Shown: in pieces, positions 23,785-26,786 of the stretch
Layout: every line of letters starts with the position of its first letter
Numbering within the stretch: the stretch's first letter is position 1
DNA from: Macrostomum lignano
Lineage: Eukaryota
DNA length: 64,000 nucleotides
Assembly: GCA_002269645.1 (NCBI GenBank)
Contig: NIVC01001390.1
Location: 62,001 to 126,000, forward strand
Direction of reading: 5' to 3'
Translations under genes and position numbers: made by a program
Notes under the pieces: model-generated
What the model was told of the DNA's origin: nothing
What the model saw: only the letters and a program-made list of their open reading frames with translations
Database searches by the model: none

Positions 23785-26700
23785 ATGCGCTTAATCTCTA
23801 TCGGCGGCCTTGCACTGCTGCTCGCTGTAGTCGCCTGTCAAGCAACAGATTTGGATGTCGAGGAGGCCAGAGAGTCTAAGGATGCTCTCCAGACTGCCAA
23901 TCTGCCCGCCTACGTTGGACCTCAAGAATTGGATGTGAGTAAACATCAATAAGGCATAAGACAAGTAGAAGTTTGCAAGTGGGCTGGTAGTCACCCTGAT
24001 GCAAAGCGCCAGACATGCACTCAGACACACGCTCACGCTCAATCATACATGCGCAACTGCTGGCCGACCTGGCCGATCTAGTCACCGTAAATTGTGGTGG
24101 ACCAGGGGTCGCAAAAATGCCCACCCCAAAGAATACAGACGTAGTACTAATTAGATGACTAGGCATTTAGCCCTTATAGAACAGTGATAGTTACTCCTGC
24201 CGTTTACCCAAAATTTGCGTTAATGTTGCTGTATGGTTTCTTTCACAGGTAAGTCACATTTTTTGGTCAAAAAGTAAATCGCATGGTCAGTGTAAATCAG
24301 GGGGGTTGCGCATGTATGCGCTCAATAGTACATTTTTGATACCGTAGCGCTCATTAGCTTTCATATTGGTTGTTATCGAATAACACGTAATACATTTACG
24401 AGATACCAGCTATATTGTCTGATTGTCTAAATTTATTCACCCCAACTAATTGAGTTAATTATTAATAATAATTTCAGAAACCACGAAGGCATCCAAAAAA
24501 ATTTTCTTTGTGCCATTCCTAGTCAAAGCCGCCGCTGCCGCTTTTGTTAAATTCAAAGCTGTCGCAGCTGCTGTCGTTAAATTCAAAGCTGTCGCCGCTG
24601 CCGCTGCAAAGACGCTGTTTGTAAAGCCGCTTGTGGCAGCCAAGACGTTCATCATCACAAAATTGAAGGCTGTACCGATAGTAAAGAAGATTCTTTTAAT
24701 AAAGTCTAAAATAGCTGCAAATTTGAAGAGCCTGTCGATTGTAAAAAAGCTTACAGCGTTAAAGACGAAAGTTTTTGCAAAGCTCAACGCACTGCCTGCT
24801 GTTGCAAAAATCAAAGGTGTACACGCCAAGATCACAGGCATTGTAAACAGGAACCCTGTTCTCAGAAAACTCGTTGACAAGTACGGCCCGGGAGTGTTGG
24901 ACAGGATTCCGGGACTCCGGAAGCTCAGAAGAATGGAGAAAAAAGTTCGCAAAGTTATCAAATCAATTTCGGGACTAAAGAAAATCAAAGCTGCCGATAG
25001 GTTAATTAAAAAAGCGATATCCAGAATTCCAGTCGTCGAGAAAGTCAACAGAATAACTGACAAGTTGTCAAAATATTTGGAACCTCTGAAGAGTATACAT
25101 GCCCTGAAAAAAATCCCCGGACTGAGGCACCTCGCCAATGGCCGAAATATCGAAACACTGATGAATGCTCTGAAGGTGTCCAGCTTTTCTGCACTTCAGC
25201 AGAAGCTAAAGCAGCTGAACTTCCGTGACCTAATGCGACGCCTTAAGGCTCAAAACCTGGCCACTTTGATGAAAAAGCTGAATTCGCCAAACCTCAATAA
25301 GCTAGTTCAAACGCTAAGTGTTACAAGCATTCCAGATTTATTAACTCAGGCAAGAATTGAGGGTGTATATGGGCTAATGAAAGAGTTAAATGTAAAGAAG
25401 CTGTCAGAACTGATGGAAAAAACGGGCTCCAAAAACCTAATGGCATTCTTGAAGCAACTCGGAATAAAAAGTTTGCGTGGCCTGAGACACGAACTACAAA
25501 TCAAATCTCTAACAGACCTCATAAATCAACTCGACGCCAAGAACCTACGTCAGCTTCTGAAGCGTTGTGGTTTGCGAACAGTGGGCACTCTAATCAAGGA
25601 AGCTGGCTTTGACGATCTTAAAGAGTTGATGACCAAGTTTAACATTACCGACGTTCCAAAGCTGATGGACCAGCTGGGGTCAAAGAGTCTGCACCAACTA
25701 TTACGAGAGGTCGGACTTCAGAACCTTAAGAGCTTGATGAAACAAGTACGCATTCCTGATCTTCAAGGTCTAATGAGTCAGCTGGGAATTTCGGATGTTC
25801 AAGGACTAATGAAGCAACTCGACGCTAAGAACCTACGTCAACTGCTGAAGCGTTGCGGTGTACGAACAGTGGGCGCTCTAATCAAGGAAGCTGGCTTTGA
25901 CGATCTTAAAGAGTTGATGACCAAGTTTAACATTACCGACGTTCCAAAGCTGATGGACCAGCTGGGGTCAAAGAGTCTGCACCAACTATTACGAGAGGTC
26001 GGACTTCAGAACCTTAAGAGCTTGATGAAACAAGTACGCATTCCTGATCTTCAAGGTCTAATGAGTCAGCTGGGAATTTCGGATGTTCAAGGACTAATGA
26101 ATCAACTCGACGCAAAGAACCTACGTCAACTGCTGAAGCGTTGCGGTGTACGAACAGTGGGCGCTCTAATCAAGGAAGCTGGATTTGACGATCTTAAAGA
26201 GTTGATGACCAAGTTTAACATTACCGACGTTCCAAAGCTGATGGACCAGCTGGGGTCAAAGAGTCTGCACCAACTATTACGAGAGGTCGGACTTCAGAAC
26301 CTTAAGAGCTTGATGAAACAAGTACGCATTCCTGATCTTCAATGTCTAATGAGTCAGCTGGGAATTTCGGATGTTCAAGGACTAATGAAGCAACTCGACG
26401 CTAAGAACCTACGGCAAATCGTTCGTAAAGTGGGTCTTCCAACTTTAAAGGCTTTCATGGAACAGACTGGTATCTGCAATGTTACGTCTCTGATGAAGCA
26501 GTTTCATATTTCAAATCTCTCCAGTCTGATTGTTGAGACGGGCAGCTCAAAACTAAGTGATCTTCTGCACACGCTTGGATTGAAAAGTGTCAAAAGTCTG
26601 ATGTCTGAACTTAATATTCGCAGTGTCTCTGATCTGATGGCACAGCTAAACATCAGAAGCATTAAAAGTCTGATGAAGCAACTAAATGCGGCTAGCATCC

Positions 26701-26786
26701 CGGAACTTCTGAAGCAAACTGGGATCAGAAGCGAGTCCAAATTGAATGCTGAGATAGCAAAAACTGCAGGAATCCACAAAGAGTAA
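23785..26786 (+). CDS. Secreted ~800-aa Lys/Leu-rich repeat protein (20-aa cationic amphipathic repeats plus ~44 12-aa helical repeats), unknown family
   Basis: Exon 1 23785-23934 MRLISIGGLALLLAVVACQATDLDVEEARES...ELD|gtgagt. Acceptor at 24477 precedes a 2.3-kb open frame ending at 26786. The junction is off by one base, so either a small missing exon or a homopolymer indel at ~24495-24505 is needed. Confidence 0.75.

Follow-up and report, generated by a model that had tools for sequence, protein, structure and literature searches.

As a laboratory model, the flatworm Macrostomum lignano serves research on regeneration, bioadhesion and sexual selection, and in all three fields its lineage-specific secreted proteins are studied. 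We analysed a stretch of 64,000 nucleotides from the genome of strain DV1 (assembly GCA_002269645.1, contig NIVC01001390.1, positions 62,001 to 126,000 of the forward strand), referred to below as the window. Window positions 11112-32086 aligned with contig positions 73112-94086 at 100% identity over 20,975 bp. An unannotated gene on the plus strand at window positions ~23785-26786 (contig positions ~85785-88786, window plus 62000) encodes a putative secreted protein with a polycationic N-terminal region followed by 45 predicted helix-turn repeats of 12 residues. The closest described system for these repeats is the superhelix of the MgtE N domain and FliG type (PF03448; 2yvy, 2oux, 8gpv), which has the same helix-turn period of about 12 residues, the same spacing of hydrophobic residues (i, i+3, i+4, i+7) and a small residue or Gly at the turn. 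The MgtE N domain is cytosolic, acidic and Mg2+-binding, and consists of roughly ten helices, whereas the M. lignano array has 45 repeats, is basic (net charge +35) and belongs to a gene with a signal peptide exon, which predicts a secreted product. Pfam detected neither a CBS pair nor the MgtE membrane domain in this product.

Similar arrays of the 'hG-x3-hK-x-L-x3' type (P0002-P0004, P0007, P0020, P0032) are found in bacterial eCIS-core (DUF4157) polymorphic-toxin-like proteins, in SLH-anchored proteins and in RTX/planctomycete proteins. They are made of 16-30 units, often free of indels, in extracellular or exported proteins, and they share period, register and orientation with the M. lignano array, with hydrophobic residues at columns 4, 7, 8 and 11 and G, T or N at column 12. 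The oriented register of the 12-residue motif is common to the M. lignano protein and to P0002-P0004, P0010 and P0022. Unlike the basic M. lignano product, the bacterial array proteins are mostly acidic, and their arrays are flanked by eCIS-core, transmembrane/toxin, SLH or RTX modules, none of which was found in the flatworm protein by Pfam. Nothing in the bacterial array proteins matched its N-terminal region.

Three further systems resemble other parts of the protein. Cationic secretory precursors with an anionic propiece include the precursors of antimicrobial peptides (AMPs) and eosinophil major basic protein. The M. lignano gene has the same succession of signal peptide, acidic propiece (net charge -6) and cationic mature part, and one of the two readings of its splice junction (A7T5, see below) adds a KPRR boundary; it differs from these precursors by a mature part of ~770 residues made of tandem repeats, which has no sequence similarity to such families. 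Exchangeable apolipoproteins, like the N-terminal region described here, consist of tandem helices of ~20 residues parted by Pro. A preliminary description of this locus had called its layout apolipoprotein-like, a label that our tests do not support: the period is 20 rather than 11/22, residues 1-132 of the exon-2 product contain no acidic residues to make class-A helices, the hydrophobic moment is modest in the first six units, and the Pfam Apolipoprotein family (PF01442) gave no match at E<=10. The third system comes from M. lignano itself. The polycationic protein Mlig-ap1 is secreted and acts as a cohesive component of the glue, in a proposed mode of action that centres on charge interactions, with a charge-based release; it is longer than 5000 residues, with hydrophilic K/R regions of isoelectric point (pI) above 14 and with vWD, C-type-lectin and other domains (PMC6410801). 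Compared with this published description, the protein reported here is likewise a strongly positive, lineage-specific repeat protein, secreted by prediction, but it is 820 residues long, hydrophobic and Lys-rich, carries a helical array of 12-mers and has none of those domains.

A constrained gene with two predicted exons

The open frame of the gene spans positions 24480-26783 (768 codons) and is closed by a TAA stop codon at 26784-26786. No stop interrupts it, as compared to 22-89 stops in each of the other five frames. Two additional copies of the locus were identified in the assembly, on NIVC01000695.1 (L004/L001) and NIVC01001630.1 (L002), which fits the redundancy already known for the DV1 assembly (PMC5730564). 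Both were compared with the window over the gene and a 10-kb flank, up to window position ~30.7 kb, and all three copies share the gene order reprolysin, reprolysin, a gene for a 74-residue peptide, the gene described here, and Inscuteable. A main frame of 759 codons and the number of repeats were kept in 3/3 copies. The window and L004 differed in this frame by a single, synonymous substitution; the more diverged L002 copy showed 44 substitutions, of which 28 were synonymous and 16 non-synonymous, corresponding to a ratio of non-synonymous to synonymous rates (dN/dS) of 0.17 (binomial test against neutrality, P=1.7e-8). Because the frame is open in three copies and the diverged copy gives a dN/dS of 0.17, we conclude that this is a functional coding gene. 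The proposal that a gene for a two-part repeat protein lies here was therefore borne out: it is a real, constrained, unannotated coding gene of M. lignano, with two predicted exons.

The first in-frame ATG of the exon-2 frame is at 24933. About 152 codons precede it, all open and none of them ATG, and the 142 codons that could be compared upstream of this ATG contained 4 synonymous and 2 non-synonymous changes. These leading codons being both open and constrained, the start codon must lie upstream of exon 2. The first part of exon 1 (23785..23844, plus strand) provides a start codon and, as read from the sequence, a signal peptide of 20 residues, MRLISIGGLALLLAVVACQA, with a basic n-region, a hydrophobic core of 15 residues and small residues at -3/-1 (C-Q-A). 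The second part (23845..23934) encodes a putative acidic propiece of 30 residues, TDLDVEEARESKDALQTANLPAYVGPQELD, with a net charge of -6 and a pI of 4.05. The 50-residue peptide encoded by exon 1 is identical across the genomic copies, and all 4 of the 4 nucleotide differences found in L002 are synonymous.

Exon 1 is followed by tandem splice donors, GTGA/GTAAAC (23935..23940, plus strand; a slash marks the splice point), with the consensus donor GTGAGT beginning at 23935 and another GT at 23939. The intron measures 543 nt (23935..24477), or 539 nt with the second donor, and ends at the acceptor AATAATTTCAG/AAA with its AG at 24476-77; it diverges by 2.4% from the L002 intron, with zero indels. 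Exon 2 (24478..26786) carries the open frame from 24480 onwards, and close to its start lies a homopolymer run (24495..24505) that reads A7T4 in the window and in L004 and A7T5 in L002. This is the sole indel between the gene copies over ~3 kb, and the choice of an in-frame donor depends on it. In the A7T5 version, splicing from the consensus donor (23934/23935, GAT/GTGAGT) keeps the frame and yields a protein of 819 residues, in which a dibasic KPRR falls exactly at the exon boundary, where the propiece meets the mature part. With A7T4, the junction 23934/24478 is out of frame and reaches a stop after 14 codons, and the second donor (23938/23939, GA/GTAAAC), 4 nt downstream, restores the frame to give a product of 820 residues; in this reading the boundary is ELDVKTTKASKK, KPRR being present only in the A7T5 reading. 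The shorter run may be a homopolymer or polishing error (PacBio/Pilon), a real allele whose frame is compensated by the tandem donor, or a null allele of recent origin.

The upstream exon with a signal peptide and an acidic propiece, as put forward in the preliminary description, thus fits the sequence, and an in-frame splice is available in every copy. The junction 23934-24478 proposed with it is right for the A7T5 copy L002; the window requires a donor shift of 4 nt or one extra T. With the same classical signal peptide in all copies and an in-frame splice in each, secretion of the product is plausible on the strength of the sequence. Within the intron, acceptor and donor consensus sequences stand side by side at 24237-24254 (TTTCTTTCACAG/GTAAGT), resembling a recursive-splice or zero-length-exon site; no in-frame alternative exon using this site was found. 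Candidate polyadenylation signals ATTAAATAAA are located at 27113..27122 on the plus strand, ~330 nt 3' of the stop codon and before the annotated start of Inscuteable at 27743.

A tblastn search of the rest of the window with the protein revealed no paralogue. An exact-sequence look-up of the 758-residue open reading frame (ORF; 24510..26786) returned no record, a literature search found no papers matching peptide strings of the protein or the identifiers Mlig004062 and Mlig015519, and scans of the window for Rfam families and tRNAs gave no matches.

Two periodic regions and their relatives

The exon-2 product has a net charge of +83 and a pI of 10.4, and its two parts follow different periods. 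The polycationic N-terminal region comprises exon-2 residues 1-220 (24480..25139, plus strand), with 44 K, 11 R, 4 D and 3 E, a pI of 11.5 and a grand average of hydropathy (GRAVY) of +0.29. It opens with an Ala/Lys/Phe/Val tract including a 30-bp repeat at 24523-24606, and all its acidic residues are found after residue 132, the first 132 residues containing 27 K, 2 R and no acid. The counts given in the preliminary description for residues 1-122 of the 758-residue ORF (24 K, 2 R, zero D/E) were reproduced exactly. The same holds for the seven recurring motifs at residues 55, 75, 95, 115, 133, 153 and 173 of this ORF (VPIVKKI, LSIVKKL, LPAVAKI, NPVLRKL, IPGLRKL, ISGLKKI and IPVVEKV), which mark seven Pro/Gly-punctuated units of ~20 residues (24672..25091, plus strand). 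The residue-class autocorrelation at lag 20 was 0.406 as compared to 0.216 +/- 0.029 in shuffled sequences, a value reached by 0/5000 shuffles; the autocorrelation at lag 10 in this N-terminal part was not significant. Single-sequence AlphaFold2 (AF2) predicted the units as helices of ~18 residues. Mean hydrophobicity ranges over 0.15-0.46 in exon-2 residues 1-132, and the helical hydrophobic moment is modest in the first six units (0.22-0.35) and high in those at residues 145-200 (0.64-0.82). We considered that the 20-mers might be stretched 12-mers and rejected the idea: a scan with a position-specific scoring matrix gave few windows above the shuffled 99th percentile, none of them following the 20-mer register.

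The second region is an array of 45 uninterrupted 12-residue repeats covering exon-2 residues 221-760 (540 residues; 25140..26759, plus strand), with the MgtE_N-like pattern described above. Its consensus reads I-K-(N/S/D)-L-x-x-L-M-K-Q-L-G, 42/45 units have L at column 7, and not a single indel occurs across the 45 consecutive units, so that the strict 12-residue period reported in the preliminary description was confirmed. At 25527..26417 (plus strand), a higher-order unit of 288 bp (8 x 12 residues) has recently been repeated in tandem to 3.1 copies of 97% identity, a copy number equal in all three genomic copies. This tandem repeat covers 891 of 2307 bp, and the other units of the array are old and diverged.

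Pfam assigned the protein to MgtE_N (PF03448) with 59.6 bits for the whole ORF and 63 bits for the array alone, the gathering threshold being 25.9. Searched exhaustively with HMMER, 1.84 billion cluster representatives yielded 48 matches at E<=1e-3, all of them in the 12-mer array and none above ~30% identity. Most array matches were bacterial, to eCIS-core (DUF4157) toxin-like, SLH-anchored, RTX/planctomycete and tape-measure-like proteins at 22-26% identity, and the bacterial arrays were also assigned to MgtE_N by Pfam. The top match, P0001 (3e-28), was a CH-LIM protein of the vertebrate type whose 12-mer reads GVPDLAGVASRL, and we rejected it as a coincidence of period; the eukaryotic matches from snail, Salvia and Dreissena come from unrelated taxa and were not retained as relatives either. 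With the full ORF as query, neither a word-seeded homology search (E<=1e-3) nor a search of PDB sequences gave a match. A profile search of PDB sequences with the array alignment returned Pumilio (2e-5), MgtE (4e-4) and FliG (0.065). For the N-terminal 220 residues, no homologue was found among the 1.84 billion cluster representatives or the PDB sequences.

Control sequences indicated how such scores are to be read. Fully shuffled arrays had no MgtE_N match, and when the order of columns was permuted consistently, three of four arrays had none and the fourth scored 20.8 bits. Column-permuted arrays nevertheless matched unrelated Pfam families, namely LED_rpt (85.5 bits, gathering threshold 59) and DNAJC11 beta-barrel (48.7 bits, threshold 27). 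Reversal of the array left it with 44.7 bits on MgtE_N, and a reversed query still reached 83, 63 and 56 bits on three database matches, with E-values down to 1e-18. Matches to the toxin arrays depended on direction (100 bits for the real query and 29 for the reversed one, 83 and 32 in a second case); for P0007, P0015 and P0020, the reversed query scored equally well as the real one, or better. Permuted and reversed arrays both scoring high, E-values of perfectly periodic proteins are not evidence of homology. This is a lesson of method beyond the present case, as scrambled arrays can reach 85 bits in profile searches and the matches of periodic proteins cannot be read as common descent.

Judged from the repeat pattern, the level at which the match holds, the array and MgtE_N-like arrays share one structural type of repeat. 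As an origin of the similarity, convergence through the expansion of repeats is no less probable than homology, which these matches do not demonstrate. The statement that the protein belongs to no recognisable family therefore needs to be divided. It does not apply to the array, which matches above threshold a repeat type already known from bacteria; it stands for the N-terminal third, a module without a detectable relative.

Structure predictions were in line with a solenoid. Single-sequence AF2 modelled the whole exon-2 product as all-helical, with helices of 7-10 residues in each 12-mer and a mean predicted local distance difference test score (pLDDT) of 47.8, and this model was set aside as too weak for a fold search. 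With an alignment of in-register arrays, AF2 gave a model of a 192-residue segment with a pLDDT of 65.1. Foldseek aligned this model with the cytosolic N domains of MgtE (2oux, 8gpv, 2yvy) at 2.1-2.9 A over ~100 columns, with probabilities of 0.96-1.0 and E-values of 0.2-1.3; PUF and ARM proteins aligned poorly, with a root-mean-square deviation (rmsd) of ~14 A for PUF. An alpha-solenoid of short helices is thus a reasonably supported fold class for the 12-residue region, as the preliminary description had suggested; the models support the class and not its details.

Proposed function and alternative explanations

We tentatively propose that the gene encodes a lineage-restricted secreted polycationic alpha-solenoid pro-protein (~820 residues) that binds polyanionic material, a reading to which we give a little less than an even chance. 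We infer its secretion, the processing of its propiece, its binding partners and its tissue. Exon 1 would supply the signal peptide and the acidic propiece of 30 residues, and exon 2 a basic, all-alpha mature protein. The head of this mature protein (~220 residues) would consist of hydrophobic, Lys-rich helices of ~18 residues with a Pro/Gly break every 20 residues, and the 45 12-mers would stack as a continuous superhelical alpha-solenoid of the MgtE N domain type, with I, L or M of columns 1, 4, 7, 8 and 11 in the core and K or R of columns 2, 5 and 9 on the surface. A basic product combined with a signal peptide and an acidic propiece suggests a pro-protein that is stored with its charge masked: the propiece would cover the cationic head during storage and be removed later, KPRR in the A7T5 reading being a candidate convertase-type site. 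The freed protein would be a rigid, polycationic rod; with its Lys-rich head and its basic surface it could bind polyanions, among them the glycans of mucus or glycocalyx, membranes and charged substrates, and it might thereby lend structure or cohesion to a flatworm secretion.

If secreted, the protein would be a natural building block of unusual regularity, a basic helical rod of 45 indel-free 12-mers with a lipophilic cationic head, of relevance to the biology of secretions (mucus, glue, defence) and to repeat-protein design.

Several observations weigh against this proposal. In the window and in L004, splicing at the consensus donor breaks the frame, so that secretion of the long product hinges there on the weaker donor or on A7T4 being an assembly error. 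Confidence in the structure is only moderate, with pLDDT values of 47.8 and 65.1 and no Foldseek E-value below 0.1, and the high scores of the reversed array and reversed query described above detract from the MgtE_N match. The protein itself is unrepresented in the library of 1.84 billion clusters, and it has no GenBank gene model in any of the 3 genomic copies. In the GenBank submission of the assembly, transcripts overlapping repeat annotations were taken out beforehand (PMC5730564); this filter is the likely reason for the missing model, whose absence is therefore not evidence against expression. It also follows that annotation-based screens cannot have seen the gene. Finally, six tryptic peptides of the protein were not found in 4 supplementary files of footprint and tail mass spectrometry (PMC6410801), a weak negative result, as Lys-rich proteins digest poorly and the text of the files may be truncated.

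The alternative that survives best, although we consider it unlikely, is a membrane-active defence protein, in which the freed Lys-rich N-terminal helices would, like a giant cationic AMP, enter or disrupt anionic microbial membranes and the 12-mer rod would serve as a carrier or oligomerisation scaffold. A signal peptide, an anionic propiece and a cationic region form the layout of many AMP precursors, and the M. lignano protein shares it. The composition of exon-2 residues 1-132 (27 K and 2 R without an acid), the hydrophobicity of 0.15-0.46 and the moment of 0.64-0.82 at residues 145-200 would also suit such an activity, but the first six units, at 0.22-0.35, would not. Moreover, the mature product of ~770 residues is far above the typical size of an AMP and has no internal dibasic sites or acidic spacers for the release of peptides, and no similarity to AMP or pore-forming families was detected in Pfam, the PDB sequences or the 1.84 billion cluster representatives.

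Somewhat less probable still is that the protein contributes to what reproductive or adhesive glands secrete (seminal or prostate fluid, cement gland, shell gland, duo-gland adhesive organ), possibly paired with the neighbouring 74-residue peptide. Numerous lineage-specific proteins are released by the glands of M. lignano. A polycationic protein forms part of its glue, for which a small releasing factor of negative charge has also been postulated (PMC6410801). The neighbouring gene, annotated as BOX15_Mlig004062g1 (g2 and g3 in the other copies; 22086-21862, minus strand), encodes a signal peptide and an acidic mature peptide with about 9 D, 6 E and 2 K in 51 residues (net charge ~ -13); it lies head-to-head with the solenoid gene, 1.7 kb apart, in 3/3 genomic copies. 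Against a gland secretion stand the absence of the six peptides from the footprint and tail files and the report that the releasing vesicles are protein-poor (PMC6410801). The K/R regions of Mlig-ap1 are hydrophilic with a pI above 14, whereas the region described here is rich in Lys, Ala, Val and Ile and hydrophobic (GRAVY +0.29), and a dN/dS of 0.17 is unlike the fast evolution typical of seminal fluid proteins.

By its charge, the 74-residue peptide could complement the polycationic protein. It had no homologue beyond its own cluster and its exact-sequence look-up gave no record; a paralogous relationship between exon 1 and this peptide was considered and found unsupported (BLASTP E=0.17). 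In the most far-reaching reading, the polycationic solenoid and the head-to-head acidic peptide would form a charge-complementary secreted pair, co-regulated from their shared 1.7-kb intergenic region, which we regard as very improbable. Such a pair could be a polycation/polyanion coacervate or an attach-and-release system, and the 74-residue peptide would then be a candidate for the postulated 'small negatively charged releasing factor' of temporary adhesion. In this same reading, though independently of the pairing, the 12-mer array would be a de novo reinvention, in an animal lineage, of the bacterial MgtE_N-like extracellular solenoid. A 15-bp minisatellite, GGCTTTAGCACCAGG, is found at 22616-23189 (38 copies, 91% matches) and occupies one third of the intergenic region between these divergent genes for predicted secreted proteins; alignments suggested that its length differs between the genomic copies.

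An intracellular product is doubtful, ranking in our estimate below the two secreted alternatives of defence and gland protein. Here exon 1 would not be joined to exon 2, or the A7T4 copies would use the consensus donor and make only a peptide of 64 residues, and the long product, if made, would be intracellular, for example a polycationic nucleic-acid-binding solenoid. The loss of frame at the GTGAGT donor in the window and L004 speaks for this possibility, as do the profile match of the array to the Pumilio RNA-binding repeats (E=2e-5) and the basic surface, which would suit nucleic-acid binding. On the other hand, every copy keeps the leading codons of exon 2, about 152 without an ATG, open and under constraint, and in the A7T5 copy the consensus donor makes a perfect join. 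Foldseek favoured the MgtE N domain (rmsd ~2 A) over PUF (~14 A), and no nuclear or RNA-binding domain was found in the Pfam search.

A non-functional ORF, whether a by-product of tandem repeats, a pseudogene or bacterial DNA, we hold to be the least probable explanation: the window is rich in minisatellites that create long spurious ORFs, the gene is unannotated and its best database matches are bacterial, but the recent tandem repeat makes up just 891/2307 bp, the frame is intact in 3 copies under a dN/dS of 0.17 (P=1.7e-8), and the bacterial matches, 22-26% identical, are limited to the repeat pattern and partly reproduced by the reversed query. Together with the spliceosomal intron, the signal exon, the host-like GC content and the conserved synteny between animal genes, these findings led us to reject both horizontal transfer from bacteria and an ORF arising as a repeat artefact.

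Neighbouring genes and other elements of the window

On the far side of the 74-residue peptide gene, two paralogous reprolysin/M12B metalloprotease genes are arranged divergently at 12507-14522 (minus strand) and 16335-18227 (plus strand). Their products measure 538 and 532 residues and are ~60% identical at the N-terminal ORFs. Downstream of the solenoid gene, a homologue of Inscuteable is annotated from 27743 on the plus strand, and its C-terminal exon at 47316-47783 matches Pfam Insc_C at 9e-38. The span of this gene is crowded with long minisatellites of extreme strand skew (among them 28126-29768, 33222-34331, 36923-37819, 38707-39592 and 42940-43638), which give rise to many spurious long ORFs.

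The left part of the window carries several elements of another kind. Two adjoining ORFs at 545-2302 on the minus strand resemble a remnant of Polinton/Maverick or virus-like type: one encodes a P-loop ATPase of 242 residues with a weak match to Pox_A32 (E=0.002, below threshold), the other a product of 331 residues without a Pfam match. An assembly gap (3022-3550, 529 N) lies beside them. Between 8000 and 12000, the GC content rises to 56-60%, as compared to about 44% elsewhere. This block includes a fragment of reverse transcriptase at 8307-8834 (RVT_1, E=9e-5, below threshold) and a 33-bp-type minisatellite at 11351-11916, and it is probably a retroelement insertion.

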